From Paramoeba atlantica (Eukaryota > Protista > Discosea), in assembly GCA_977017575.1 (NCBI GenBank), contig CDRNVI010000099.1:62001-126000 (forward strand): a DNA stretch of 64,000 bases, in the 5' to 3' direction. Positions 14,788 to 61,387 of this stretch are shown here, piece by piece; positions within the stretch are counted from its first letter, which is position 1, and the number at the start of each line of letters is the position of its first letter. The translations under genes and the position numbers were made by a program. The notes under the pieces are model-generated. The model saw nothing but the letters and a program-made list of their open reading frames with translations, was not told the origin of the DNA and made no database searches.

Positions 14788-16391
14788 TATAAGCTGAAGA
14801 CATACGTCTACGGGGTAAAAAGAATCCCAGAGAGTGAAGCGGATGATGAAGGAGATGATGGGGATAATGAGGGGAATGATAAAGGGGATGGAGGGTATGA
14901 CGAAGGGAACGTTGATGGGGATGATGAAGGGGACGCTGGTGGAGACATTGAAGCTAACGAGCTCCGAATCCTGCTTTCCAATTTCTTCCGTAGAACTCTA
15001 CGATCCCAACATTACATACTCCCATCATATCCCATCATTGTTCATAATCCCATCATTGTTTACCAATAAAAAACACGAGCTTTCTTTGATTGAAATTCAT
15101 AGTCAAGGTCCCGCTTCATCACAAAACGTTTTTCAAAATGTATGAAGTACCGTACTATCCGTACTAGGGAGATGTATGGGTATACTAAATTTTGTCTAAA
15201 AAGCAAAAAATAATTTATAATTATATTTAATTTATCAGTAGTTGCTAGAAAAATGTTGCCTTGACCTTAAAATGCGATTTCTTGCCGTGTGATGACTAGA
15301 AAGTGGATCTGTCGCTTCTAAAAAAGGGATGTCTCCCGCTCCTGTTGCTGGGAGGGGGGGGTAGGTATACTAAGTGGGCACGGGTATACTATCCTGGAAC
15401 ATAGTTTAGTATTAAACAAGTTTAGATAGTAGATTTTTTTACAAATTCTTTTGATTACGATTTCTCTTTCCATGACCTTTCCACCGTACGGTCGAACTGG
15501 TACGTGGCTCCGGGCTTTGGACCGGTATAGCAGGCTTAAAGGAGACCGAGGTTACCGAAAGGAAGTGGATGTTGTCACGGGGGGTATTACAGTCCATGCT
15601 GTGCATTCATCGTCAGTTAGCCCCTAGGACACACTTCATTTGCCTCGGCCTGCTATTCTCGTGAATATGAAAGTCCCGATCCAGCCACTAGTTGTTTTTC
15701 CAACGGCGGCCACTGCGCCTCCCCCCCACTAAGAAACGCGGAAAACCGGAATTATGGGATGATCATGGCGATAATGAAGGGTAAAATGAAGGGGATGGCG
15801 AAGGCGATAGTGATAGTACGGTATACAGTGGTTAATGGAAGGCCCTCGCGAAGGGCAATCCAGGTTCCTTATTGTTCTCGAAGTGGGATCGACGTTTGAC
15901 TAATAAACTATAAATGATGCAACCCACCACTTTAATTGGAATAACACTCGAACATGGACTAGGCGTTCATTGCGGCATGGGAAGGCCACTGAGCTTCGAG
16001 TCCGTGGTATTCCTATTTCAGAGAGGCAATTATTGGGACGATGGCGGTCTCACTCGTCAGAACAATCGAATGTCACAGCCTACTAGCGCCAACCACGGGA
16101 GTCCAACTCCCCGTAAATAGCCAGCATGTGACATCCAATCATTGGCAATGTCACATTGTCACATAGGCAATGTCACCGCCGACTTGCCACAACCCAAGGG
16201 AGGCCAATTCCCCATAACTAACCAGCATGTGACATCCAATGTTACTGCCTACCAGCGGGAACATGAGAGTGTTGCGGTACTTCACCATGCCTAACTGCCC
16301 TGCAGCATGCCAAGTCCAGCTCTATACGGTTCGAATGTCATCAGCAAGACTGACACATCCAATTCAAGGCGTACAACTCGATCGAATGATC

Positions 16392-22350: not shown

Positions 22351-22391
22351 AGAATATCATTCATTTTTGGAGGGCTCTATGCGCAAACTGA

Positions 22392-22586
22392 GTGTGTTGT
22401 TCTACCTGCACAGGATTCCCTGTACAAGGAACAACACACCATTATCTCGGCGTAGTAAACACGCCTTTGCTTGCCTGGCACAGTGATTGCCGGAAAATAA
22501 TATTTTTTTTTCCGGTTCATTTCACTGCCCAAGCTGCTTCCCACTTAAGGGGCTTGTCCCCACAACTGAGTGATCTCCCCGGCAAC
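22392..22586 (+). ncRNA. Conserved structured RNA motif, copy A (upstream of RT ORF)
   Basis: 11-bp stem GUGUGUUGUUC/GAACAACACAC, then CAUUAUCUCGGCGUAGUAAACACGCC and further hairpins shared with 46585-46706 and 48119-48319. Confidence 0.65.
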
Positions 22587-22623
22587 GTAGTATTACCTAC
22601 ATGTGTCAAGGAGGCAGAGAAGT

Positions 22624-22952
22624 GGGAGTCACGAATGACCTCGGAGGCAGATGACTACCTCCGGAGCGTGCACCCTCGGGACACGGAGTCTACAAGAAGA
22701 CCTCGAATACCATACCAAACATGATTCAGAACACATGCCCGAGGGGAGGGAGTCACGAATGACCTCGGAGGCAGATGACTACCTCCGGAGCGTGCACCCT
22801 CGGGACACGGAGTCTTCGAAGACCTCGAATACCATACCAAACATGATTCAGAACACATGCCCGAGGGGAGGGAGTCACGAATGACCTCGGAGGCAGATGA
22901 CTACCTCCGGAGCGTGCACCCTCGGGACACGGAGTCTTCGAAGACCTCGAAT
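22624..22952 (+). repeat. Tandem repeat, 2.7 x 122-124 bp, in retroelement 5' region
   Basis: gggagtcacgaatgacc starts at 22624, 22748, 22870. Confidence 0.95.
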
Positions 22953-25356
22953 TTGATTATTAATAGAGGGCTGCGCAGTATGTCGTGGACCGGTATCTAG
23001 CGTGTTTATGGAGCTGTGATAATGTACGGTATTCAATGTCCCGCATGGAGAGAGTACGTGCTAAGTGTATGCCACGACTTCCTAGGGAAATCTGAACAGG
23101 GAAGATAGAGACGGCTTGGAATCTCCTTCTAGCTGTTAAGCGCTTCCTTTTCTTCCCGGAGGACAAGCTATCGCAAAGACAGCTTGCACGCGAACTACGC
23201 ATGCGAGCTCACCTTGAGGGCTCAGAAACCTCGGCCCCGACCACCCCCAACCCGGCCAACGGCTCCCCTATGTCGGCGGTCAAACGCGCGACGGAACTGA
23301 TTAGAGCAGAAGCTTTCTCGAGAGCCGCCAAAATTCTGGAGGCACCGCTCGACCCACCGGCCAATCCCGCGGCAGCCCTTGCACAAGCCAAACGACTTCA
23401 TCCTTCTGAGGGACCCTACACCACGGGGAAATATCTCTACGATAAGGACCGACACGGGTCCCTGCCTTCCCTTGCGGATGTAGCTAGAAAGGCCCAAAGC
23501 CTGGCACCGCTTCGCGCCCCAGGCCCGACAGGGTGGACTAAAGAACTCGTAACCCCAGTTCTAATGGACAACGGTCCACGTGACACAGTCACGTGGACCA
23601 TACATGGAATACTAACCAACTCTCTCCGTCCCTCGATGCGCGAGCTGCTTACGGGGGCATCGTTGAAACTATTTACCAAGCCGGGCGCCCCAGCTGGACA
23701 TCACTCCTCGTACCGCCCCATAGCGATGGGGGAATGCCTTCTGAAGGTCGCCGGTCTTCTGGCCCTGGAGAAAGTGAGAGAACACCTCCCCACATTCTTC
23801 CAAGGACTCCAGTTCGGAGCACAATACACCCAAGGGTGTGAACATATTATACACAGTGTCCGAAAGCACTTCCGGGACAGGCCCGATGAAATCATAGTGG
23901 CTGCGGACCTGGAAAATGCTTTCAATATCTCGCGGTCTGTCATCTTCCGGGCCCTGGAGGGGGACCCGAAGCTACTCCCTCTGGAGGGTATCACCCTCTT
24001 TAGCTACGGGAAGGCTAGCTCTCTTCACTTGGGGGAAGGTACATCTATTATAAGTTCCAGAGGGGTTAAGCAAGGTGATCCTATGGCTCCTATCCTATTC
24101 GCCATAGGGATACACGGGGCCATAGCCAAAGTGGCTGCTAAATTCCCTGGAACCCTCAAAGTCTGGGCGTCTCTGGATAATGTTACCTTTGCAGGGGAGC
24201 CCAAGGTGTGCGGGGCGGCCCTGGAGGCAATGCAAGGGGAGATTAAGTCACTAGGGCTTAACATCCCTTTTGAGCATAAGGCCGAGGGCATGCAGGCCAA
24301 GGCCAAATGTGTCCTGCAAGGCCTACCTCAAGGCCAGTCGACTAAAGATCAGCGTCGCTCCCTCTGCGAGGCGGCCCTACTGAAAGGCCCATCCACCACG
24401 CAACTGGTCTGCATGCGGCAGATTCAGAACGTTCATTCCACAAAGTGGATGAATGCGTGGCCCAACCGGCCGGAGTACTACATGTGGGACCCGCAGTGGG
24501 AGACTACGGCCCGTCTCCGGTACTTGGTCGCCCGTACCTCGGAGCCTGAGCTCCAGTGCGTGTGCGGTGCAACCCTCCGCAACGAGGAGTTTTGCGTACA
24601 CGCACTGGATTGTAAGAAGGTTAAGGGGAAAACCCAGGCCTCCCGCCACAAGGAGGTCAAGGAGGCCTTCAGAAACCTCCTAATCCACTACGCGTCTAAT
24701 CCAAAGGTAGGTTTAATCCAAAGGTTCTCATCCAAACTATGGATCTACCAACATGCCGTCCTATCCGAATTGCGCTTTCAATTCGTTGTTCATGCTAGCC
24801 TTACTCATTCAGTGAGAGGCTACAAAAGAGAGCCACCCACCATATCAAGAAGTGGATGAACTTTGCCTCTGCCACCAGTACTGAAAGCTTATATACCTCA
24901 CGCGGATGGAATCTTACAAGCGCATCGCAATTATGGCACCTTTGGACCGGGGAAGCTCTTTGCCATATGCAAAGTTCTTGTGACCCGAATGTGCTACAAT
25001 CCCTCCGCTCCCGAATAGAGGAAGAGAAGAATGTACCCCGCCGAGGCTTGATAAGACCAGCAACTTATACTCTTGATGATCTTGCAGATTTCAACCGAGT
25101 CAAGGACATCCTACGCAAACAGTATGAAACGAACACGTTACAGAAACTGAAAAAACGGGCCCCAATAAGTTCAAAATGGTGGGTCCTACCGGTTGATCCT
25201 GACACAGCTAAACATTTTGCGGCAGCGATAAACGGAATAAAGAACTATAAGCTTTCCCGATTTGCAGCATCGATTATGACCCTGACACCTCTCCCCTCCT
25301 GCGCCGCTCTCCGCAGATGGGGAATATCATCACACTCAAATACGACGTGCCCCATA

Positions 25357-26883
25357 CAGGGGTGCGGGTCTAAAGGTGGGGGGGTCTAAAATTCGTAAAA
25401 GTTGTCCAATTTTGGAAAATAATAGCGCATTGGATAGCTCTCACAGAGTTGTATGTTTTAGGCGCATTAAAACCCTGTGATTTTTTTTGATACCACATTT
25501 CGCTTTTTTCCCTCGCAGGAATTACATTTTTTACTAGAAAATGCCCCAAATGCGCGCTCGCTCGAGGACTTCCCGTGGAGTACTGAGCGATAGATCGTAT
25601 TCTTCCCCCGCCCCCGTCAAAGAGAGTCACCGCATGCTTTTGGTGGCGGAATACGAGCGCACAGGATCGTACTCCGCTACGGCGCAGCACTTTGGTGTTC
25701 ATGAGAACACTGTAAAACGTTGGGTTGAACGTTTTACCCTTACGGGTGACGTGTTAACGGCATCCCGAGAGCGTGTCTCGACGGTGGTTACCCCTGCGTT
25801 CCTGGATGTGGCTCTCAAGCTTGTCGACGAGGGGTATCGCGACCTTGTTTACGGCGTAGAGAGCTGGAGCGATCTTCTGCGAGAGATCCGTAGCCAAGGA
25901 TTCACCTGCAGTCGACGGACCCTAGTCGACACATTGAAGAAGCAAGGCGTTGTGCTCCGCACTCTTCGGCGACGACCATCACTCACACTCGAACACAAGG
26001 AGAAACGGTTGCAATTTTGTAAGGCGATGCTCGAGAAGAGCGACGCTCAACTCCTTCATTTTGTTTATTGTGACGAAAAGAAGTTTACTTGCGGTCGTGG
26101 GCGTTCCGGGCGAACTTACCTTTGTCGGAGGACGGACCCCCATAAGGAACAACGAGGCGAGCTAGAATCATGGTACGGCGGAAATGGGATTATGGTTTGG
26201 ATGGGTGTGAGCCTCAAACACGGCTTCCATCTCCACATTTTCCCTCCTCGAAATTCAGAAGGCCAGAAACTCACCGTTACGGGTGAAATTTTTGATCAGG
26301 CTATGAAAAAGCCACGGGGCTTCCTTCAATATTTAAAGCGACATCCAGCGGCCATTATTGCCATGGACAACTGCCCGGCCCACAACAAGGCGCGTGCCAC
26401 GTTCCGTGATACAGGAATTTCCGTTCTCCCCTGGCCTGCAAAATCTCCAGACCTGAATCCGATCGAAAATTTGTGGTCTGTGATGGACACAGACAAAAAT
26501 CTTCTTCGACCCCGAAATCGACAGCAACTGGAAGCCGCCATTGAGGGGTCTTTCCTTAAATTGAAACAGACCCACTCTGCAACGGTTCAGAAAACGTTGA
26601 AGAGTTTCAGGAAGCGTTGTGAAATTGTTATTAGTCGGAACGGGGGGCACTGTGGTTACTAATTGTCTTTTGCAATCCAAATTACAGAAATTATTGACAT
26701 CACTAAAGTATTGCAATATGTGTTTTTGACCCTTACATGAAAGGGGGGTACCCCCCAAACCCCGGATGCTACCTATCCTAAAACATACAACTCTGTGAGA
26801 GCTATCCAATGCGCTATTATTTTCCAAAATTGGACAACTTTTACGAATTTTAGACCCCCCCCACCTTTAGATTCGCACCCCAG
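25357..26883 (+). mobile_element. Complete Tc1/IS630-family transposon with ~105-bp TIRs, at TA
   Basis: TA|CAGGGGTGCG left end; inverted copy at ~26778-26883 with altered last bases; splits the host retroelement in its CPI|CS zinc knuckle. Confidence 0.92.
25541..26662 (+). CDS. Tc1-like transposase, DD32E (373 aa)
   Basis: N-terminal HTH (TVKRWVERF), CDEKKF, MDNCPAH, WPAKSPDLNPIENLW; intact frame. Confidence 0.93.
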   Translation: MPQMRARSRTSRGVLSDRSYSSPAPVKESHRMLLVAEYERTGSYSATAQHFGVHENTVKRWVERFTLTGDVLTASRERVSTVVTPAFLDVALKLVDEGYRDLVYGVESWSDLLREIRSQGFTCSRRTLVDTLKKQGVVLRTLRRRPSLTLEHKEKRLQFCKAMLEKSDAQLLHFVYCDEKKFTCGRGRSGRTYLCRRTDPHKEQRGELESWYGGNGIMVWMGVSLKHGFHLHIFPPRNSEGQKLTVTGEIFDQAMKKPRGFLQYLKRHPAAIIAMDNCPAHNKARATFRDTGISVLPWPAKSPDLNPIENLWSVMDTDKNLLRPRNRQQLEAAIEGSFLKLKQTHSATVQKTLKSFRKRCEIVISRNGGHCGY

Positions 26884-33446: not shown

Positions 33447-36400
33447 TACAGGGCATTACCTGTAGAGTAATAAAGTCTAACAGGACGTACGCATATGACG
33501 TCGCCTGCTAGACCATTTGCTAACCAAAGCTTTGGTTGTCCCATAAAGGGGATTCCCTTTTCAGCCAGAGTTGAAAGCTGCTCCGGATCGCCGTTCGGAT
33601 GACTTCGACACGGCACTTATCTGAGAGTGCCTTGTCACCCAAAAAGAGACGGTTGATGTGACGCAGCGTCGTAGAAGGGAGACCTCTAGCTCCAACTTCA
33701 AAGCATATCAAGTGGCAGTCTGAGTACCTTATTTTCGTCGGTGTAGAATATTTATGTACTTTTCTACTTTTCGGCAGTGGGCTTCGTGTACGTTTTCCTC
33801 CCAGGGCATCGTCAACTCAACGATAAATTCAGTTCCGTCGTTGAGTTTGACGATTCCATCTGGGCGAAGCTGTGTTTCCAGGTCGGACCACCATGCGGGT
33901 AGTTGACGTAGGTGTGGGAGATCAAAATGTGCCTCTGCGGTATGGGGGGAAGAGAGTATCGCGTTTGCAAAGGTGGAGAGTACACAATCATGGCGATATG
34001 TGTAACGTCCCTGTTCTAGTGATACCTTGCACGAGGATAAGAGGTGTCGTAATGTTTCCGGTTCTTGTTTACAAATTCGGCATTGTACTGTATCTGTGCC
34101 GTGAATTCCCCATGTCCTCAGCATTGTCCTAGTAGGGAGAGTGTTTTGTACCATTAAAGAAGTTGCGAAGCGGCTAAGGGAAGTGCTACGTAGTCCGTTT
34201 ATCGCGGCGCTGAAATCTTTCGCCTGTTCTTCCTCGGAGGCTATATCCCACCACTGAATAGCGAACGTTGACCTGCGGCGTAGTGCGTTGATCATTCGGT
34301 CCTCATTAAGCTCAAGAAGAGTTCGTTTTGCGAGGTCGCGATCCTCCAGTATGTGTGTGATGTCACATGCTGGTCGAATTTGGCCTTTCCTGCGCTTATG
34401 TTCTTCAGCCCGTATTCTTTCCTGCAGTGCGGCGGTAACGTTCGGGTCTCGGGACCGCTTCATTTGACAGAGAAGATCAGCTGTACAGTCCTCCCAGAGT
34501 CTGGACAAGCTGCAGATGTTCCATCCACGCTGAGAGTAGATTGCTTCGCTGCATGTAGTTCTAGCCGCATTGATCCACCGTTTCAGGGAGTGAGTACACA
34601 TTTTCTGAAGGCGTAAAATAAAGTTGAGCGTGATACATGGGTGTATAGTAAAGGTGAAGCGTAGCCGAGAGATGATTGCGTGTTGATATATCCAAATTTT
34701 TGATGGGAGGTCGTCGGCCGACTGCTCCAAGGAGGAGGCGTGGTCACGCGAAATAATCTCGTATGGTGGAAGTGTTGGGACCGTTTGGGGCTTTGATGGC
34801 TGTACTTCTTCTTTGTCGTCGGTGCGAAGGAGCAGAACGATCCGAAACGCCGATAACCCAGGGACCGCTCTCCCGTTCAGTACCTTGTTTACCGCTTTAC
34901 CCATTGAGCTAGGTGATGCGTAGTGGTTGTATAATTCCAGGCGGCTGTCGTGAAAAAGAGAAACCCAGTTCGCGTGGCGGGAAATGTGACTTGTTGAGTC
35001 TACTCTACTAACTTCTAAAAAAGTCACACGCTCTCTTTTCCATAAGTTCGTCTACGGTACACGTTTCTACGACGATGTCGTGTGCTGCACTTTTCCCATT
35101 GAGCGCTTTGGACAGGGCGGCTTCAGCCCCCTGGGGGGAAGGGATACGACTACGCACAAGTTGGCTTACGCATGCTGCATGCACATCCGGGAAATATCTC
35201 CATGTGTTGTCGTTGACGAGGCGGAGTTTGACAGGTTTTGACCGGGACTGGATAAAGTGGAAACGTTGCTTGTGTCGGTTATGGGTTACGGGATGCGTGG
35301 GGTCCTGGGGCGGCGGGAGATACTGTGACGGGCTGTAGGGAGTTTGTGTGGGAATCTGGGGACCCTCGGATTCATCCGAATGTAAATGGGTGTCCAGTTG
35401 TGATGGGGGTAAGAGGCTTCCTTGTTCAAGCGGCGGGCTTTGTATTCGCCCTACGCTGTGCGCTTGTTGGAAAACCCAGGATGGGACTTCGTCATCGCCA
35501 TTCTCATTCCGCGGACTGTGTTGGTGTGCTGGGGAAGATGAGTCCAAGAGAATGATACTTTCCGGTGCCTTGTTTTTGGGAGTCGGGATGGCTGGTTCCC
35601 TGGCAACGGCACGGTCAGCTGTCGTAGTGGTTGTGTTTAGGGACCGTGTGACGAGATTCTTGAGAAGGGTACATGGGCCGGTGGGTAGAGTATCCTGCCC
35701 ATCCAGTTTGCTTATCGGTGTGTCAAGCGAAGTCAACGGTGTGCCAGTGCGTTTGCAGCAAGGATGGCCGCACCCTGCCTTGTTCTTACATTTATGCTTA
35801 CAGGGCTCAACACGGTCTGCTTGTTCGGAGGCGGGGCCTAGGCCTTGCTTGCAGCACACGTGCTTACATTGATCTTTACTCTTGCAGATATGCTTGCATA
35901 CTCTAGTTAAGGCGTGGACCTGAAGTTGTGTTGGAGATTTAGGTTTGGGGAGGCTTTGGGAGTCCGGAGTTTGACATGGAACGCCGTTGAAAAGTAGGAA
36001 TTTGGCAAGCGAGCAGGCAGTTGATGCGACGGCACGACCGACGGTAACAGTGGGTGATTTTTGATGGGGAGTAACCTCCTTGGGTGGGGGTACATGTAAA
36101 TCGTGTTCGTCTTTTGGACAGGGTGCTATTGTGTACGACAAGCGTTCCTGTCCGGTGCTGCTGTGAGGTCGTACGGTTACCGCCGGGGTTGAGGGAGTGC
36201 CGTTAGCGTACGGTTGAGTGCGGCTTGAAAACAGATATCGTGTTGCAGCTCGCGCTGCCATGCCAAGTAGGTTGCTTGATTTCGGTACTTTCACATCCTG
36301 TGTTACGTGGTCACGGGTGCATGGCGGTGACGTTTCGTCCCTTTGTCGCGTACTTGGAGCTTCTTTGGGCCCGGATTCTTGGCCGCTCGCCGTAGTGCTC

Positions 36401-37085
36401 GTGAGTTCGTATGTTGTTGGTGTAAGATTACGTTTGCAACATGGGTGCCCGCAGGTCTGTTTGTTTTTACAGACATGCTTACAGGGTGTGCTACGTTGTA
36501 CCGGCATTACACTCACAGCCGTGATCACCTTTACGTCTTCTCTTGCATCCACCGGTGCGTCACTTCTCTTATTGTTGTACGTATCCGGTTTTACTACGCG
36601 TACCAGGTGTCGTTTGCAGCATGGGTGTTCACAGTGAGCTTTGTCCTTGCAGCGGTGTTTGCACTCCGGAACCGTTTGTTGTGTGGTGGGGGGGACGGGG
36701 TGAGGGGGAAGTTCGTTTGTGTGAGGAGTGACCAGGATATGTGGCCGCGTTACACCCCGCTTGCAACAGGGGTGTCCGCAGGTGCTTTTGTCCTTACAAG
36801 GATGTTTGCATGGAGCTGGGGGTGCTTCTCCTGTGTCGCTGGTAAGGGACTCATTGCTCTTTTGGGATATGAGAGCCTGGACGGTTCGGGTAGCAGATTT
36901 TGCAACCCTGTCTGTGGGAGTGCCTTTCAGGGACAGGTTTTTGTTTTGGTTAGACACGTCGCGTGGTCTCTTAGGAGAGTCCTGCGACGCCTGGTGTGTG
37001 CCCTTCCCTAGTAGTAAGCAAAACATGTCGTTGTAAAGGGTAGGGAAAAAATAAATAAAATCAACAACAAAGTACAGAAACTGTA
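33447..37085 (-). mobile_element. RLE-type non-LTR retrotransposon (R2/NeSL-like 3' half), RT core deleted
   Basis: ORF 35008-37026 with 5 Cys/His repeats; ORF 33729-35027 with KIWIYQH thumb, CRIC..H....C knuckle, GRYTYRHD, RPDG..ELT.PWE; tail ICFEVGARG at 33520-33711; no QG/YADD RT motifs. Confidence 0.88.
37065..37085 (-). other. Spliced-leader exon 3' fragment (SL relic)
   Basis: TACAGTTTCTGTACTTTGTTG; euglenozoan SL exons end in ACAGTTTCTGTACTTTATTG-like sequence (1 mismatch); not followed by a GT donor; 38 nt before an ATG. Confidence 0.8.
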
Positions 37086-40278: not shown

Positions 40279-41151
40279 CTAAAAATCAACATCCAGGTTT
40301 CGAATACACGTATTGTAGTACTTGAACGATCCGTCACGCAAGCGGAGGGGTAATTCGTCTTCGTGGAATTTGCCGTGAAGCTCTTTGTTCTCAAACAACC
40401 ACAAGTACTCCATTTTCGTTGGGAGACAATCAAAGGTAACTGAACCATAAAATTGATTCTCCTGTAAGTATAATTGTTCTAGTGCAGATGACAAATGTCT
40501 TAGATCCGGAGTTCCTGTAAACTGATTGCGACCCAAGGAAATATGTTTCTGATGCGGAGCTAATTGTGTCAGATCCAGCTCGCCATATAACGCGTTTTCG
40601 TCAATCGAAAACCCATCTAGGGGTTCCGGCAGACAGGTGAGATCAAGCCTTCCTGTAAAATCGTTCTTGTGCAACACAAGCTGAAATATTTGTCGAGGAA
40701 GATCTTGTAGATGCAACTCCTCTGTGAGCACATTATTATGAAGGTCCAACCACGTCAAATTCCGAGGCACGACGTCGAGTGGCAGTTTTCCCCCGAGTCG
40801 GTTGCTGTTCGCAAAAAAGCCTGTAAGAGTCTGTGGCAAATATTCCCATTGCGGCGTACCACATAGTTTTCGGTTATCCCACATGATAGCGATGATTTTA
40901 TCAGCACCAGCGCACTTCACACCTTCCCACTCACACGCAGGCAATGATGTATTTCCAAATACGGAAGGTCCAGATTCCATGCCAGAGGTAATGTTTGTAA
41001 GAAATCGAGCTAACTCATACTCCTGTGGCAGGGTAGCGCCTCGTACTTTGGATGTACGCGAGGGGAACGTGGCAGTGTTTGAAGAAGCAGATTGCTTTTG
41101 CCGCTTCCGTGGCGGTGCATCAGCATCGGACAGAACTACCGTAAATCTCAT
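40279..41151 (-). CDS. LRR family protein with RKRQK motif (likely start MRFTVV at 41151)
   Basis: PPRKRQKQ, RTSKVRGATLPQEYEL, CEWEGVKC, ~8 LRRs; ORF track extends to 41247 through a duplicated repeat. Confidence 0.9.
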   Translation of the reverse strand: MRFTVVLSDADAPPRKRQKQSASSNTATFPSRTSKVRGATLPQEYELARFLTNITSGMESGPSVFGNTSLPACEWEGVKCAGADKIIAIMWDNRKLCGTPQWEYLPQTLTGFFANSNRLGGKLPLDVVPRNLTWLDLHNNVLTEELHLQDLPRQIFQLVLHKNDFTGRLDLTCLPEPLDGFSIDENALYGELDLTQLAPHQKHISLGRNQFTGTPDLRHLSSALEQLYLQENQFYGSVTFDCLPTKMEYLWLFENKELHGKFHEDELPLRLRDGSFKYYNTCIRNLDVDF

Positions 41152-41171
41152 GAAGTCAAAATATAAAAGGA

Positions 41172-42788
41172 ATGTACAGTAATGTATCCAGAGAGCTGAA
41201 CTACAGTAGAGATACAGCTGTATCTGTGTACAGCTCTCTGAAAACAAGACAAAACCACAGTGCAGTTCAAGGTGTCCCCACCCCAGTAACTAAAATGCAA
41301 AGAAATCATGATATGTTAATTTTTGGTTGAGCTTGAAATTGGTTGGAGCCGAATTGGCAATCCGTGGTTGAGAACTGTGCGATTTCTTCTTCCTTCATCA
41401 TCGGCCTTCATAGAAATTGCTCGTCGTACTTTTGTAAACCGTACGCGAGCTGGGAAAAGGGTGGTGTCGAAAATTTCAACGGCGTCGTCAGAGATTTCTA
41501 CCCAAAGTCTCATCCTTTCAGTAATATATCCCAAGCAGACCTTGATTCCGTATCCAGTAATACCAATGCTCGACCGAAAGTGGTGCTCCAAGACCAGTCC
41601 CCATCTGAGTTTGTGCAAAAATTACGGAAAATTCGACCGCAAATTCTCTTGGACAGCTCGCAGGAACCTTAAATCTCTTTTCGTGTGCGTGGGCTTCTTC
41701 CTTCAAATATTGTGTTATAAAACACTAATTTCCTATGAAACTGCGCGGGCCTTGTTTGTATTGGATATTTGCATTTCGTGTGCGTTCTTGCATAGAATGT
41801 CGTTTTCTTTACGTGTATGGGCATCAAAAGGTCTTGGCTTTATTACGGGTTGGGTATGGTGGAAAAGTTGGGCTCAGTCAGAAAAGTTGGGCTTCAGTCG
41901 TCTTGGCTTTGTAAGGGATTGGGTATGATGGAAAAATTGGGCTACGCAAATTGCTTCCCACTAACGACACACATTTTTGTCTTGCAGACGGGTAAACAAA
42001 GTCTTGGCTTTTCTAGGGGTCGGGTATGATGGAAAAGTTGGGCTTCGCAAATTGCTTCCCACTAACGTCAGACTCAGTGGCCCGGCCGGCCCCTCCGTGC
42101 GTTCGGCCTCTTATATTCCCCAAAACAACTACCACCTTCCGCCCATTTATCAGGGGTCGCTCGCGCGACCCCCGCTAAATAGGGGGGGAAGGTGGTAGTT
42201 GTGGGGTATGGAGGCCTCTCGCAACTCCGGGGCCTCACCGGGAGCAGGAATGAAATACTAGCGCTCTTTAACTTGTTTCTCCCCTCCACTTTTTTTCTTT
42301 TTAACTTATTTCCCCCCCTCCACTTTTTTTCATGGGGTCGATTTTTTTTTCGAGGGGGGGTCACTTTTTTTGAGGGGCTCGCAAAAAATATGCATTAAGG
42401 GTGCGAGTTTTTATGCATTATCAGTGGGACAATATGCATTATCAGTGGGACAATATGCGTTATCAGGGTGCATTATGCAGTATAAGGGTGCGAGATTTAT
42501 GCGTTATAAGGGTGCGAGTTTTATGCGTTATAAAGGTGCGAGTGGCATGTACAGTAATGTATCCAGAGAGTTGAACTACAGTAGAGATACAGCTGTATCT
42601 GTGTACAGCTCTCTGAAAACAAGACAAAACCACAGTGCAGTTCAAGGTGTCCCCACCCCAGTAACTAAAATGCAAAGAAATCATGATATGTTAATTTTTG
42701 GTTGAGCTTGAAATTGGTTGGAGCCGAATTGGCAATCCGTGGTTGAGAACTGTGCGATTTCTTCTTCCTTCAGCATCGGCCTTCATAG
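41172..42788 (+). repeat. 242-bp direct repeats (41172-41413, 42547-42788) bracketing the IS30-like fragment
   Basis: Near-identical sequence at both positions. Confidence 0.9.
41427..41672 (+). mobile_element. IS30-like transposase C-terminal fragment
   Basis: YFCKPYASWEKGGVENFNGVVRDFYPK..N.RPK..L...SPSE matches the IS30 YF..P...W.KG..EN.NG..R...PK..N.RPR....P signature. Confidence 0.78.
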
Positions 42789-43456: not shown

Positions 43457-44401
43457 TCAATGGAAACCACAGTATAAATCAACACCTCGAGGGAGCCTTC
43501 CGTGAAATTTCTTTTTCGGAACCCAATCCGTAAACTTATTCCCCCTCAGCAACACCCCATTATCCTCGCTCCATTCCATATACAGCATCTTGTGCTCCTG
43601 AACTTCCCCAAAATCCACAACCCCTTCGAACGCATTCCTCCGCAAATCCACATAAAGCATCGAGGGGGGAAAATCACCCGGAAAGGTCACCGACCCCGAG
43701 AGCGCGTTGCCGAATAAATTCAACAGGACCATAGACGACGGCATCCCGCTTAACTCCAGCCCCTCCGTAAACTTATTCCTTGACAGGTCGAGCCGACAGA
43801 GCGACGGGGGTAACCCTTTCGTAAGAAAAAGGGGCCCGGTAAATCGATTCATCCGCAGCCCGAGTTGCTGCAAACTCACCGGAAGGGCGGAGAGATCAAG
43901 AGCCCCAGAGGATTTCGCCTCCTGGAGGCGTAGCTCCGTGAGCTGCGGGTGATGTGAACTTTTACGGGGTAGGGGATAACCCGATAACCCGGTGCGCACC
44001 ACATCGACCCTACGGAGTGACCTGGGGAGATGGGAAAGGGTGAAGCCATCCCCCAGAATCGTGGGGTAGCTGTGGAGCTGGAGTTGCTCCAGGGTCGCGG
44101 GAAGTGCCCCCCAGGAGAGGTTTCCGGCGAGTTGGGGGGATCCCGCACGCCCGAGGAGGGTGAAAATGTTTTGGTGGGTATCACAGGTAATGCCGCGCCA
44201 CGTGCAGGGGGAGAATTTTTTTGCCGCTCCGAAGAGGCTCCGCTTTTCGGTCACCCAGGAGGGGTCGCGAACGGTGGCCCCGAGGAGAAAGGTTTCTAAC
44301 AAGTGCTCCTGAGGGAGTAAGTCGAGGCGTACTTTGCCGCACTTAAGGTGGGATCCGTCGTCCGCACCGTTGAAAGCATGACGCTCGAAGTTAAGAAACA
44401 T
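43457..44401 (-). CDS. LRR family protein (314 aa), ADDG subfamily
   Basis: ADDGSHLKCGKVRLDLLPQEHLL, SPCTWRGITC, LRRs; related to 60383-61387. Confidence 0.9.
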   Translation of the reverse strand: MFLNFERHAFNGADDGSHLKCGKVRLDLLPQEHLLETFLLGATVRDPSWVTEKRSLFGAAKKFSPCTWRGITCDTHQNIFTLLGRAGSPQLAGNLSWGALPATLEQLQLHSYPTILGDGFTLSHLPRSLRRVDVVRTGLSGYPLPRKSSHHPQLTELRLQEAKSSGALDLSALPVSLQQLGLRMNRFTGPLFLTKGLPPSLCRLDLSRNKFTEGLELSGMPSSMVLLNLFGNALSGSVTFPGDFPPSMLYVDLRRNAFEGVVDFGEVQEHKMLYMEWSEDNGVLLRGNKFTDWVPKKKFHGRLPRGVDLYCGFH

Positions 44402-45077
44402 TCCCGATGGTGAGTAGGGCTGTCCAATTCGAAATTTAAGCTACAACTTTGTAAATTAGCTGTGCAATGTAGTACCCCATAATGCCCCAGGTGTAGATCA
44501 ATGCCCTAGGGTAGTAAATCCATCTTAGCAAATCTCTCATTCAGCTTATTCAACTTACAGTATAGCCTTAATGTACAGTAAAGTACTTACAGCACAGTAC
44601 TTACAGTACAACCTTAATGTACTACAAACTTGCAGGCTTAATGTACTAGCGATGGTTCTCCTCATTATAAATCTTCTATTCTTCACATTATAAATATTAT
44701 TTACTTAGTATCTATGGAGATTATGTAGACAGTAGTTGGAGGTCGCTGACAGTCGCTGGCGATGGCTGACAGTCGCTGGAAGTCACTGGAAGTCACTGGA
44801 GGTCAGGATAACTAGAAATAGGACGAAGTCAACTGAAGTGAGGGGTGAAGCGTTGGAGTTCAACCCAGTTAATTTTGTTTTTGAAATGAGAATTCATATT
44901 TGACCCAAAAGAGGATCTGTCAAAGTTCAACACCTTGTTCTGATAGTAGTTTTGTCATGCAGGGCAAGACCGCCAGAGATATTTAGGGCCAGCAGGGGTA
45001 GGCACAATCAACGCTCCCTGCTGGACCTCTTCGCCTTCCGTGGGGACGCAGTGAAGGGCGCGGGATATCGAGTGATA

Positions 45078-45160
45078 CTTCATTATCACTCCTTCGTAAA
45101 CACGCTTGTTACCGGTCCCAAGCCCGGCACCGCCATATTCGGCGGAGTGTGAGGGTGAAG
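45078..45160 (+). ncRNA. Twister ribozyme, distinct family
   Basis: CUUCA-UUAU-CACUCC..GCUU..CCGG-UCCCAAGC-CCGG-[CGCC AUAUUC GGCG]-GAGUG-U-GAGGG-UGAAG; 4-bp GCUU/AAGC pseudoknot; L1 is UUAU rather than canonical UAA. Confidence 0.8.
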
Positions 45161-45318
45161 ATTTCAATACATCTATAGCACGATTATAAACTAAATATAA
45201 TTGAACTACTTGTTTCTAGTATCCAGTAGAACTACTACATTTAGCTCCATTTACCTAAACAATCTTACACGCCTGAAAATGTCACGCATCAATTCGCTTG
45301 GTCCCGGCCTGGCAGTAC

Positions 45319-46566
45319 TTCATCCTCTGTAACGAGGCCCATGGGCTCCGTACCCTTCGGGTATCACCGCCCCAGCATTCGTGCTGCGAGGCCCATGGGC
45401 TCCGTGTCCTTCGGGGCACACTTGCCGTTGCATTTATATATTCATCCTCTGTAACGAGGCCCATGGGCTCCGCACCCTTCGGGGTACCACCGCCCCAGCA
45501 TTCGTGCTGGGAGGCCCATGGGCTCCGTGTCCTTCGGGGCACACTTGCCGTTGCATTTATATATTCATCCTCTGTAACGAGGCCCATGGGCTCCGCACCC
45601 TTCGGGGTACCACCGCCCCAGCATTCGTGCTGGGAGGCCCATGGGCTCCGTGTCCTTCGGGACACACTTGCCGTTGCATTTATATATTCATCCTCTGTAA
45701 CGAGGCCCATGGGCTCCGTACCCTTCGGGGTACCACCGCCCCAGCATTCGTGTTGGGAGGCCCATGGGCTCCGTGTCCTTCGGGACACACTTGCCGTTGC
45801 ATTTATATATTCATCCTCTGTAACGAGGCCCATGGGCTCCGTACCCTTCGGGGTACCACCGCCCCAGCATTCGTGTTGGGAGGCCCATGGGCTCCGTGTC
45901 CTTCGGGACACACTTGCCGTTGCATTTATATATTCATCCTCTGTAACGAGGCCCATGGGCTCCGTACCCTTCGGGGTACCACCGCCCCAGCATTCGTGTT
46001 GGGAGGCCCATGGGCTCCGTGTCCTTCGGGACACACTTGCCGTTGCATTTATATATTCATCCTCTGTAACGAGGCCCATGGGCTCCGTACCCTTCGGGGT
46101 ACCACCGCCCCAGCATTCGTGTTGGGAGGCCCATGGGCTCCGTGTCCTTCGGGACACACTTGCCGTTGCATTTATATATTCATCCTCTGTAACGAGGCCC
46201 ATGGGCTCCGTACTCTTCGGGGTACCACCGCCCCAGCATTCGTGCTGGGAGGCCCATGGGCTCCGTGTCCTTCGGGACACACTTGCCGTTGCATTTATTC
46301 CTCTGTAACGAGGCCCATGGGCTCCGTACCCTTCGGGGTACCACCGCCCCAGCATTCGTGTTGGGAGGCCCATGGGCTCCGTGTCCTTCGGGACACACTT
46401 GCCGTTGCATTTATATATTCATCCTCTGTAACGAGGCCCATGGGCTCCGTACTCTTCGGGGTACCACCGCCCCAGCATTCGTGCTGGGAGGCCCATGGGC
46501 TCCGTGTCCTTCGGGACACACTTGCCGTTGCATTTATTCCTCTGTAACGAGGCCCATGGGCTCCGT
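45319..46566 (+). repeat. Tandem array, 10 full units plus a partial unit, ~123 bp, three TTCG-loop hairpins per unit
   Basis: Unit starts at 45319, 45441, 45564, 45687, 45810, 45933, 46056, 46179, ~46295, 46418, ~46534; two units carry a 7-bp deletion. Confidence 0.97.
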
Positions 46567-46584
46567 CACTCCTACGAAGGAGTG

Positions 46585-46706
46585 ATAATGAGGGGGTTGC
46601 TATGCCCTGTCCATGGTATCATGTTCAGGGGAACAGCAACTCCCCATTATCTCGGCGTAGTAAACACGCCTTGGCTTGCCTGGCACTACGATTGCCGAAA
46701 AAAAAA
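46585..46706 (+). ncRNA. Conserved structured RNA motif, copy B (3'-truncated at an A-run)
   Basis: AUAAUGAGGGGGUUGCU/AGCAACUCCCCAUUAU stem plus conserved core. Confidence 0.6.
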
Positions 46707-46767
46707 CTTAGTTCCTTAATCCTCACTTGAGGCATGGTAACGGGAGTCCTCCCCCCTAAGAAGATTT

Positions 46768-47030
46768 GAAGTTGAAAAATATGGAGTGTTCGGGGGAGAG
46801 AAAACAAAGGGGGAGACTATTGTTGGTGCGTTATAGATCCCCCCATATGGAAGTATCGAGGCACACCGGACGTCTCGGGTTGACGCTCGAAATACGAATA
46901 TGAAGTTGAAAAATATGGAGTGTTCGGGGGAGAGAAAACAAAGGGGGGGAGTATTGTTGGTGCGTTATAGATCCCCCCATACGGAAGTATCGAGGCACAC
47001 ACCGGACGTCTCGGGTTGACGCTCGGAATA
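46768..47030 (+). repeat. Two ~133-bp direct repeats
   Basis: gaagttgaaaaatatggagtgttcggggg.. occurs twice. Confidence 0.9.
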
Positions 47031-47209
47031 CGGCTTTTCAGGGTATCTCGCCTAGTAGGAATATTGAATCAGAAATTCAGACCGACGATAGTGAACGCGT
47101 TAGTGCTTATTCGGTGGAGAAAAAAAAGAAAACTAGAAAAAAAAAGCAAACGGTTGCTTTGCTTGATGCATTTATACCCGATTTCTTTGTTAACGAAGAT
47201 TCATCATAA

Positions 47210-47875
47210 ATGCTGAAGGAACAACTTGGATTCTTTACATCAACACACCTAAAACATGGTTTACCATGGGGTATCAAATGTTGCACGGCATTGAAAAGTA
47301 CCCAAAATTTTATTGAATGGATAAATTGTCCCCCTTTTCACGGGAAAATAAGGAAACTATCCTCCGGGGTTTGGTTACAACATTTATTAGAACTCGTGGA
47401 ATGCGGGGTGCTACGTGTGGCACACGACTCTCGATCATCATCACGTTTATATTTACGTTACTTTGAGGCATCAAAAGGGGAGGAATTGTCAAGAAGTATT
47501 GCGGATGGAACACCACTAAATGAGATGTGCAATCGCCCTCCTGGCTTGAATTTTCCAGCTATTGCTGAAATTATCCATGTAATAGAGAATTTCCCCAACG
47601 TAAACTTTTTATCCGCTGATATGCGACACTGGTTTCACCAGAGTGAAATACCATCAGAATCGGGGCGTACATCAGTTAGGAGATCGATGTGTAATGAGAT
47701 CACGGAAATGGATGAACAGATAGGGAAACATGGACATTCTTTTCGAATTTTCCATATTAAATCTAAAGAAAACCCAGCGGACGGGTTGACTCGAGAAGGG
47801 CATAATTATGACATAAAAGAAGCACTCCTGAACTCAGCTCTAAGAGCTGGCGATGTACATGTAGACCCTATGTAA
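47210..47875 (+). mobile_element. DIRS/VIPER/TATE-like RT plus RNase H remnant, internally deleted
   Basis: RSIADGTPLNEMC..PP....P..ADMRHWFHQ (RT), joined to HIKSKENPADGLTR (RNase H end). Confidence 0.72.
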
Positions 47876-48118: not shown

Positions 48119-48319
48119 GCTGCCGGGGAGATCACTCGGTTGTGGGAGCGGGCCCCTTAAGTGGGAAGCGACTGGGCTGCGAAATGAACCGAAAATATAT
48201 TTTTTTCGGCAATCGTAGTGCCAGGCAAGCCAAGGCGTGTTTACTACGCCGAGATAATGGGGAGTTGCTGTTCCCCTGAACATGATACCATGGACAGGGC
48301 ATAGCAACTCCCTCATTAT
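48119..48319 (-). ncRNA. Conserved structured RNA motif, copy C
   Basis: Near-identical to copy B at the 5' end and colinear with copy A at the 3' end. Confidence 0.65.
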
Positions 48320-50823: not shown

Positions 50824-51663
50824 TTAAAATTTTACTTCTATTTCAGTATTCCAAATACTGAACGTCCATAGCGACCCGGGTAACTCAGAGCGCACGAAAT
50901 GGCCCGTCAGTTCGGTGTTACAAGAGACATCGAGCATGCTCAATCCCTGAGGAAGATTACGAAGCAGCAAGGGGCCGGCAAATGCATTTTCACCGAGGGA
51001 GAGCACCGTAAGGCAGGGCGGCAAGTGTTGCAAGGAAAGGGGTCCTGTAAATTTATTGGCCGATAACTTGATAATTTTCATCGTCTGCGGTAAGAACTTA
51101 AGTTCAACATTACCCGAGAGAAGATTCGCAGAAATATCCAACTGCAGCAAGCTATGAGGCAGTCTAGTCATGTCAGGTGTACCTTCAAAAAAATTGTTCG
51201 AAATGTTCAGTTCTTTTAGTCCTTGTGGCAAATGCGCCAAGTCTAATCCTCCTGTAAACTTGTTCTGGTTCAGAAACAAGTACGTGAGGCGAGGAGGAAG
51301 CGCATCCGTTGGTACAGTCCCACTCAAACGATTGTACGCGACACTACAAAACAAAAGACTTTCAGGTATCCAAACCCACCGAAGGGACCCTAGGAATCGC
51401 TGTTCCATCTCTACCCTTGATATTAGTTTTGTGGCACCGCTATACCAGTGAAGTTTAGTAATTCGTTTCTGCTTGTCGCAAGACACACCTTTCCACTCAC
51501 AGGCCGGAGTAGATCTGCTCCACGAGGCGTGAGGGGGTTCAATGTCCTGTATAAGACGCGCAAGTGCGTATTCCTGGGGAAGGTGGGCGCCCCGGACTTT
51601 GCTAGGAAGTACGGGTGAAGGGTCGATCGTGAAACATAAAAAAGGACTCAACATAGTTCCCAA
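50824..51663 (-). CDS. LRR family protein (~279 aa)
   Basis: PSKVRGAHLPQEYAL, CEWKGVSC, ~7 LRRs. Confidence 0.9.
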   Translation of the reverse strand: MGTMLSPFLCFTIDPSPVLPSKVRGAHLPQEYALARLIQDIEPPHASWSRSTPACEWKGVSCDKQKRITKLHWYSGATKLISRVEMEQRFLGSLRWVWIPESLLFCSVAYNRLSGTVPTDALPPRLTYLFLNQNKFTGGLDLAHLPQGLKELNISNNFFEGTPDMTRLPHSLLQLDISANLLSGNVELKFLPQTMKIIKLSANKFTGPLSLQHLPPCLTVLSLGENAFAGPLLLRNLPQGLSMLDVSCNTELTGHFVRSELPGSLWTFSIWNTEIEVKF

Positions 51664-60382: not shown

Positions 60383-61387
60383 CTATTTCGACCTCTGTAT
60401 ACGATACTTGGCAAAATTAATCTTCGCTCCTAGCCACAGACCATTCGGCAAACCAGGACGTTCGCTTTTAGGACCCCAATCAGTCACTTCGTTCTCATCT
60501 AAGTTAATCCCATAATGACCTCTATCAAAGTATCTTGCTAAAATTTTGTGTCCAAGTATTGGGGATAAGTCAAGATACCCAGAAAACGAATTACCGAAAA
60601 GCCCAATGTACTCCATAGAAGCAGGAAGCGTTGTGGGGAATACTACAGGGCCTTCCATGTTATTCGAAGCAAGGTTTAAATAGACTAAATTCTGGGGCAA
60701 CGCACCTAAGTCCAGCAGTCCAGTAAACTGGTTTAAGGCCAAGTCGAGCGTTCGTAATCCCGGGGGTAATGCCGTAAGTTGAACAGATCCTGTAAATTTG
60801 TTACCCCGCAAACCCAATAATCCGAGGTTGTGCGGTAGAGTGGCCAAATCGGCCTCCCCAAAAAACTTGCTGTGATTGAGCTTGAAGTTTTTGAGCGTAA
60901 GCGGAAGATGAATGAAACTTACCGTCCCGGATAAACGAGTTTGAAATATTTGAAACCGATTTAGGCAATGAGGGAGGTGATCGAGAGGCAAGTCCCCTTG
61001 TAATTGTAAGTAAGTAAGTAACACCAATGTGGTTAGTTTGCGGGGGAGGTGACTCCAACTTAAATTACCTTCAAGAATGGGACTATTCGCGTGGCCAATA
61101 ATGCTGATAATATTCTGCTCTTTATCACAGGTAATGCCTCTCCATGTACAGGGGGACACCTTTTTAAATCCGCCAAAAAATCGCCGTTTGTGTGTGATCC
61201 ATGTATGGTCACGAACTGTTGCTCCTCTCAAGAACTCTTCAAGTTCATTTTCCTGAGGTATTAACTCACGACTTACTTTTCCGCGTCGAAGGTCTGACCC
61301 ATCGTCAGCTGCAATGAGACAACGAAGCTCAGTTTTCAGATGCTTCATGAGTGCAATGATAACACGAAAATTAAGAATGTGACACAA
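60383..61387 (-). CDS. LRR family protein (~320-334 aa), ADDG subfamily
   Basis: AADDGSDLRRGKVSRELIPQENEL, SPCTWRGITC, LRRs. Confidence 0.9.
   Translation of the reverse strand: MCHILNFRVIIALMKHLKTELRCLIAADDGSDLRRGKVSRELIPQENELEEFLRGATVRDHTWITHKRRFFGGFKKVSPCTWRGITCDKEQNIISIIGHANSPILEGNLSWSHLPRKLTTLVLLTYLQLQGDLPLDHLPHCLNRFQIFQTRLSGTVSFIHLPLTLKNFKLNHSKFFGEADLATLPHNLGLLGLRGNKFTGSVQLTALPPGLRTLDLALNQFTGLLDLGALPQNLVYLNLASNNMEGPVVFPTTLPASMEYIGLFGNSFSGYLDLSPILGHKILARYFDRGHYGINLDENEVTDWGPKSERPGLPNGLWLGAKINFAKYRIQRSK

Follow-up and report, generated by a model that had tools for sequence, protein, structure and literature searches.

The element and its surroundings

The window, by which we mean the entire 64,000-nucleotide stretch of DNA analyzed, carries on its + strand a dispersed element of ~3.24 kb that extends from 45081 to ~48319. 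Its boundaries are evident from a comparison of 12 kb around a tandem array with 20 other loci, which have this one element in common and whose flanks are unrelated at each. The element begins with a twister-like ribozyme motif (45081-45165), followed by an AU-rich leader of ~150 nucleotides (45166-45318) that is 91-100% conserved in 15 genomic copies. The leader adjoins the array (45319-46566), which comprises 10.3 units of 123 bp and is documented by Tandem Repeats Finder (TRF), predicted folds, genomic copies, and higher-order repeats elsewhere. Downstream are the left part (46567-46591) and the right part (46585-46704) of an internal complementary region (ICR), and then two tandem copies of a 134-136-bp unit (46764-47032) that were detected as blastn self-matches and that, according to TRF, are conserved in other copies of the element. 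An ORF of 221 amino acids (47210-47875) and a 120-nucleotide 3′ terminal repeat (48200-48319), recognized by its complementarity to the ICR and by copy comparison, complete the element. All of these features lie on the + strand.

The conserved 3′ end of the element reads ...GCAACTCCCTCA (48315), and the 4 nucleotides that follow vary between copies. After the conserved ...CCCTCA, the sequences TTAT, ATTA, GTCT, TTTA, TTTT, and ATCT are observed (48315-48319; L024, L027, L028, L029, L034, L035), and the left end is always CATTATC. This combination of a constant left end and a variable right end points to an exchange site inside a short A/T-rich core.

The element is located inside a cluster of leucine-rich-repeat genes, with LRRNT_2/LRR ORFs on the - strand at 40279-41247, 43457-44401, 50824-51663, and 60383-61387. 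A tRNA scan identified no tRNA genes. A Helitron, which has a 5′ TC and a hairpin near one end, was considered and rejected because there is no CTRR end and the boundaries point to the ICR. Two abutting transposons with terminal inverted repeats were likewise discarded as the main reading, given that leader-array and body travel together at most loci and that the middle segment is a circle junction, inverted.

A variable array of 123-bp units

TRF reports a period of 123 bp, 10.3 copies, and 97% matches for 45319-46566 (+), which confirms the array described in an earlier reading made from the sequence alone. Each unit is built from a 55-bp module and a 68-bp module, both of which are headed by GAGGCCCATGGGCTCCGT. 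That reading had proposed a search for other genomic copies, and these prove to be numerous. A search of the 45.7-Mb genome (248 contigs, with sparse ORFs and many retroelements) yielded at least 131 matches to the unit on 16 contigs, and 2 further contigs carry relics that are 78% identical. Several loci form near-identical pairs (C99/C54, C37/C28, C12/C2, C32/C21, C3/C30, and C185/C67), and so the matches represent ~11 independent insertions. The paired loci are either haplotigs or recent duplications. C99 and C54 are 97-99.9% identical over 10 kb, and C16 and C29 are likewise a near-identical contig pair. The assembly may hold both haplotypes, or else large recent duplications, and any copy count is therefore affected.

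The number of units per locus ranges from 1 (C40 and C185/C67) through 2, 3, 6, 10, and 11 to 21-22 (C28 and C34). Even near-identical duplicate loci differ, carrying 10.3 versus 6.0, 11.4 versus 21.4, and 3 versus 2 units, and for this reason the array can be said to behave like a minisatellite. Unit lengths of 119, 121, 122, and 123 bp are found across copies. Other loci have higher-order periods of 178, 191, 257, 265, 314, or 437 bp, each specific to its locus and made up of whole units together with modules of 55 or 68 bp. Beyond this genome, the 26 contigs recovered by a metagenome pattern scan for the hairpin module are all chance matches in unrelated, mostly GC-rich sequence. The array is an expandable, variable-length part of the 5′ untranslated leader of the element and not a free-standing RNA gene.

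Single decayed units (L037-L040 on C36 and C41), 76-78% identical and accompanied by the last 43 nucleotides of the leader, are located in a repeated ~380-bp intergenic segment between tandem-duplicated EF1-alpha genes and a gene for a 1447-amino-acid DEAD/Helicase_C protein. Such 78% single-unit relics are short and carry no ribozyme end, and we set them aside as an uninformative guide to function.

Predicted structure of the unit

The unit at 45687-45809 served as the reference for single-unit folds, with 200 dinucleotide shuffles for comparison. As + strand RNA it folds with -59.2 kcal/mol versus -39.4 +/- 3.6 for the shuffled sequences (z -5.5), and none of the 200 shuffles is as good. A dimer reaches -122.3 (z -8.5). 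RNA from the - strand is less exceptional (-49.0, z -2.3), whereas the two strands of the unit are alike when folded as single-stranded DNA (z -4.2 and -3.9).

The minimum-energy fold has five helices, with ~76 of the 123 nucleotides paired: a 7-bp closing stem, a 12-bp helix formed by the palindromes, and three UUCG-capped hairpins. The hairpins are those that had been claimed (GUACCC-UUCG-GGGUAC, CCCAGCA-UUCG-UGYUGGG, and GUGUCC-UUCG-GGACAC), and two of the three indeed have the C(UUCG)G closure. Pairing between the two palindromes had also been anticipated, and in the minimum-energy fold both copies of GGCCCAUGGGCU are joined in the 12-bp helix. A small CCUC/GAGG hairpin from the same reading is absent from this fold, where its UGUAACG pairs with CGUUGCA to create the 7-bp closing stem. 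Within arrays, UGUAACG/CGUUGCA can alternatively form a hairpin that spans the unit border.

Three units were searched against Rfam at E<=1 and no family matches, nor is a hammerhead, twister, or HDV core visible in the unit. The suggestion that monomers might cleave themselves is thus without support, because the unit holds no known ribozyme. Retrozymes carry a ribozyme in every monomer, which the same search of three units does not reveal here.

A probable self-cleaving motif at the 5′ end

At 45050-45127, Rfam reports a Twister-P5 match of 22.5 bits (E 0.021), which is below the gathering score of 37.6; at gathering thresholds the whole window gives no match. By eye, the parts of the motif are P1 (CUUCG/UGAAG), U^AA, P2 (ACAC/GUGU, then GC), P4 (CCGGUCCCAAGCCCGG), and GAGGG, plus a closed extra hairpin (CCGCC..GGCGG). 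The twister core of CCGGUCCCAAGCCCGG, UAA, and GAGGG can therefore be recognized by eye despite the sub-threshold score. Both the motif and the element start, CATTATCACTCC, are conserved in all copies, beside unrelated flanks. The 5′ end of the element is probably a self-cutting RNA motif. Cleavage is predicted to occur between 45097 and 45098 and to remove 17 nucleotides; the sequence from 45098 onward begins AAACACGC.

A second twister-like core, CCGGTCCAAAGCCCGG, appears after UCCUUUAAGCCUGC at 15523 (-) in the window and at ~8049 of L030, ~7588 of L034, and ~2432 of L036. It belongs to other element families, and arrays of 67 bp and 55 bp are present near the L034 and L036 copies.

An internal junction copy of both element ends

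The left part of the ICR contains an exact complement (46573-46591) of the first bases of the element (45080-45098), which is the 19-nucleotide, 100% inverted repeat I3. The right part is an inverted copy of the 3′ terminal repeat, with 120 nucleotides that are 99% complementary to 48200-48319, so that inverted arms of 120 nucleotides link the ICR to the 3′ end. Left and right parts overlap by one CATTAT. On the opposite strand, the ICR reads as the 3′ end followed, across this shared CATTAT, by the 5′ end. Judged from these complementarities, the internal junction copy is organized like a DIRS-type ICR.

Canonical copies carry a 46-nucleotide inverted 'half twister' and a spacer of ~130 nucleotides at the ICR left part, a junction that is seen in L021, and most copies read ...CCCTCATTATCACTCCTTCGTAAG on the complement at this site. 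In the window copy the ICR is shortened, having lost the spacer and the inner 27 nucleotides. When the first 1149 nucleotides of a canonical copy are folded, the minimum-energy structure pairs the first 46 nucleotides with the ICR left part and encloses the array as a loop.

A reverse transcriptase remnant and related elements

The 221-amino-acid ORF has no Pfam match by itself, and a PDB sequence search and a word-based protein search were uninformative. Its residues 18-154 and 151-221 match parts that are ~1.1 kb apart in the 482-587-amino-acid frames of longer relatives, which are known from match coordinates and include copies on C30, C43, C19, C54, and C45. In a full HMMER scan, public homologues of 560-700 amino acids carry RVT_1, and one also carries RVT_3. 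Because its two halves match separated parts and its homologues are reverse transcriptases (RTs), the ORF is an internally deleted RT/RNase H remnant and the element is non-autonomous. The RT/RNase H expected of the DIRS order is accordingly present at the level of the family, and the window copy is non-functional.

No tyrosine recombinase frame is present in the window copy. Relatives on C16 and C29 have a 341-amino-acid frame, located between the array and the RT remnants, with a sub-threshold match to Phage_integrase (E 0.002). The C16 relative has on one strand, in order, a twister end, five 124-bp units of a second array type, the recombinase-like frame, RT remnants, and a 3′ end. Its C29 partner has eight units of this second type.

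The window also contains a related mini-element of ~645 bp (22380-23024, -), which was identified by TRF and by blastn matches of 84-88% to both ends of the main element. Its truncated twister-type 5′ end is directly followed by a second-type 122-bp array (22624-22952, 2.7 units) and then by the 3′ end region. The units of this array include hairpins with GUCA-UUCG-UGAC and the palindrome GUCUUCGAAGAC. Arrays of the second type are also found on C16, C29, C53, C54, C12, and C2. In the relatives with the recombinase-like frame and RT remnants, units of 122-124 bp occupy the same position as the 123-bp array, and the palindromes of the two types are CCCATGGG versus TCTTCGAAGA. The fold of the second type is only modestly stable (z -2.1). 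Because the second type also follows the ribozyme motif in relatives, an array of 122-124-bp units is a trait of the clade rather than of the defective family only.

In the same region of the window, a 373-amino-acid ORF (25541-26662, +) with HTH_Tnp_Tc3_2 and DDE_3 domains represents a Tc1/mariner-type transposase. It adjoins a 552-amino-acid ORF (23201-24859) with a weak RVT_1 match.

Sequence variation and the question of selection

We surveyed 92 units, 46 of them distinct, from loci of the family. Transitions in the stems comprise 12 types that keep the + strand pair through G-U and 12 that break it, and all 10 transversion types break pairs. The sequence-only reading had held that most variants produce G-U wobbles on the + strand. 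This is true of the two commonest variants, but counted by type only 12 keep a pair and 22 break one; moreover, array amplification inflates the counts of the two commonest wobble variants, which for this reason are not independent. Stem-disrupting types are thus at least as frequent within the family as stem-preserving ones, an outcome that the same reading had named as evidence against its proposal. Paired columns (76) hold 34 variant types versus 10 for unpaired columns (47), and a compensatory double change occurs in 1 unit only. Within the family, the stems are no better conserved than the loops and the structure is not under visible selection.

In deeper comparisons, a few observations point the other way. 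Two fully compensatory pairs distinguish the paralogous hairpins H1 and H3. In the 78% relics, H1 keeps all 6 of its pairs by means of G-U pairs that are possible on the + strand only, and the closing stem exchanges an A-U pair for G-C. Wobble pairs in these comparisons are confined to the sense strand. In the second array type the palindrome has changed in sequence and kept its self-complementarity, within a module that has the order GAGG-palindrome-CUCC-hairpin. When 13 units of the family are aligned with 6 relics (A3), 88.4% of cells pair, compared with 36-45% if the partners are slid. Only 3 pairs, however, have changed in both positions, and in the relics the 12-bp helix of the palindromes is disrupted, with 9 of its 12 pairs departing solely through unpaired cells. 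Because the relics are copies of one another, the signs of covariation amount to very few independent events. On these comparisons, the evidence that selection keeps the structure is thin.

Comparison with known elements

Tandem monomers occur in the 5′ regions of other retroelements, among them the mouse L1 5′ UTR and the 5′ repeats of SLACS/CZAR in trypanosomatids. These resemble the present element in that their 5′ non-coding end holds head-to-tail units of ~100-200 bp whose number varies. However, mouse L1 and SLACS/CZAR are non-LTR elements whereas the present element appears to be of the DIRS order, and its units are densely folded hairpin modules with UUCG loops. In addition, its units are located downstream of the ribozyme motif and for this reason need not act as a promoter.

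The array had been assigned to a retroelement 5′ region by analogy to SLACS/CZAR. The location is supported, as is + as the sense strand, since + carries the ribozyme motif and the RT-remnant ORF as well as the UUCG loops and the wobble pairs. The role as a nuclease-resistant or multimerizing RNA scaffold that had been proposed along with it stays hypothetical. The analogy holds for a 5′ retroelement array and is otherwise loose, given the DIRS-type ICR, the recombinase-like frame in relatives, and the lack of a spliced-leader-gene target. Insertion into spliced-leader genes is not seen, with unrelated flanks at each locus, and the only spliced-leader core in the window is on another element, at 37071-37083 (-). 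There, an exact 13-mer match is located at the head of a retroelement ORF (35008-37026), and 0 of 100 shuffles reach this count. We take this 13-mer to be the conserved core of the kinetoplastid spliced leader, and by this sign the host appears to be kinetoplastid-like.

DIRS-1-like elements are defined by an ICR (PMC7192593, PMC3266345). Like the present element, DIRS-1-type elements have an ICR in which both element ends stand side by side and inverted, encode RT/RNase H, and have no clear target-site duplication (PMC7192593, PMC3266345). Complementarity of the ICR to both termini, as in this group, is found here, but inverted terminal repeats of the DIRS-1 kind are not: the termini share only a 25-nucleotide, 80% inverted match (I2) that is offset from the 3′ end. 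The present element differs further in that its ICR is upstream of the coding part and not near the 3′ end, its long inverted arms are formed by the ICR and the 3′ end rather than by the two termini, and its 5′ end is a twister motif. A tandem hairpin array is not described for DIRS-1 in these two papers (PMC7192593, PMC3266345).

VIPER/TATE elements of kinetoplastids have split direct repeats (A1 ... B1 A2 B2), and SIRE is a non-autonomous derivative (PMC6681497). A host that appears to be of kinetoplastid type, an order of recombinase then RT (here in a relative), and short non-autonomous derivatives made from the ends are common to VIPER/TATE/SIRE and the present family (PMC6681497). Whereas the internal repeats of VIPER are direct (PMC6681497), the internal junction copy here is inverted, and the split direct repeats are accordingly absent. 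Neither 'ribozyme' nor 'hairpin' occurs in the VIPER/TATE paper (PMC6681497).

Twister variants head Perere-3 non-LTR elements, whose co-transcribed RNA has its 5′ end defined by a twister-type ribozyme, as may be the case here (PMC8501958). Perere-3 is a target-primed non-LTR element, however, without an ICR that restores cleaved-off bases and without a downstream hairpin array (PMC8501958). The present element mixes features of L1/SLACS/CZAR, Perere-3, DIRS-1, and VIPER/TATE and fits none of them fully.

Interpretation and alternatives

Taken as a whole, the explanation that we favor, with some reservation, is that a self-folding module of ~123 nucleotides has expanded, in the manner of a minisatellite, in the 5′ leader of a non-autonomous, defective retroelement that is twister-headed and of the tyrosine-recombinase (DIRS-order) type. 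Transcription would enter from upstream, and the twister would cut the read-through transcript, leaving an element RNA that would begin at 45098 and carry the array as a structured leader. The first 46 nucleotides of canonical copies would pair with the ICR 'half twister', forming a long-range stem with leader and array as its loop. The ICR right part could pair with the 3′ terminal 120 nucleotides, and the ICR would thereby hold both ends together and supply the 17 nucleotides lost to cleavage. Because each unit closes on itself, gain or loss of units would be harmless to the ribozyme and to the end-joining splint, which would explain the range of 1-22 units. Unit number might change through unequal exchange, slippage, or RT template switching at the 18-nucleotide motif that heads both sub-modules.

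The principal competitor is a neutral minisatellite, in which the hairpins are functionless, GC-rich palindromic units promote slippage or unequal exchange, and the leader is the sole place that tolerates extra DNA. We regard this as unlikely, but as the foremost of the alternatives. It accounts well for unit numbers that range from 1 to 22 and differ between near-identical duplicate loci, for the lack of a purifying signal in the stems within the family, for the decay of the palindrome helix in relics, and for the about equal folding of both DNA strands. It is less easily reconciled with a diverged subfamily that has an array of the same period at the same position, whose GAGG-palindrome-CUCC-hairpin module has a different yet self-complementary palindrome. 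The presence of UUCG in each of the three sense-strand loops and of wobble pairs on this strand only also argues against it. A role at the DNA level, with the GCCCATGGGC palindromes and the inverted repeats of the hairpins serving as binding or synapsis sites for a recombinase or other dimeric protein, or as cruciform sites, would agree with the retention of palindromy despite a changed sequence (CCCATGGG versus TCTTCGAAGA) and with the good folding of single-stranded DNA from either strand. Yet the palindrome center CCATGG is unlike the junction core CATTAT at the element ends, duplex DNA sites would not explain a long-range closing stem or sense-only G-U pairs, and UUCG loops favor RNA; we consider such a role quite improbable.

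We give least credence to the proposals that the monomer is a self-cleaving or circularizing small RNA, as in retrozymes, or that the array encodes a repeat protein of 41 residues per unit, both of which strike us as very improbable. The tandem layout does resemble that of retrozyme arrays, 123 is divisible by 3, and long open frames cross the array. Against these points, three units had no Rfam match at E<=1 and no hammerhead, twister, or HDV core is visible, and no frame starts with an ATG. Other copies have units of 119, 121, and 122 bp, which would break any frame, and on this ground we exclude a coding repeat.

For the leader expansion that we favor, the likeliest benefit, if there is any, might be that an uncapped, ribozyme-processed RNA gains a compact and stable leader or a series of repeated protein-binding hairpins; selection for this benefit is weakly supported. 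A more ambitious version, which we think rather improbable, holds that the units are repeated high-affinity sites, or an exonuclease-resistant and cap-independent leader, on the uncapped RNA of the element once processed by the twister, and that non-autonomous copies expand them and thereby out-compete autonomous partners for Gag, RT, or recombinase. If this were true, the array would be a 'hijacking' platform, tunable through copy number, in a ribozyme-headed recombinase retroelement.

Tandem repeats within transposable elements are common, and by itself the array does not represent a novel kind of structure. What is unusual is the setting, in which self-contained modules of UUCG hairpins are positioned between a probable self-cleaving head and a splint that would restore the cleaved-off bases, and the retroelement that holds them, in a trans-splicing protist, appears to be of the recombinase type. 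If the structure does not matter, the array would be a clean case of a structure-prone minisatellite seeded in a mobile element. If it does matter, the array could show how an uncapped, ribozyme-processed RNA is stabilized, translated, or packaged where mRNAs normally receive a spliced leader, and in what way full-length elements lose machinery to defective competitors.
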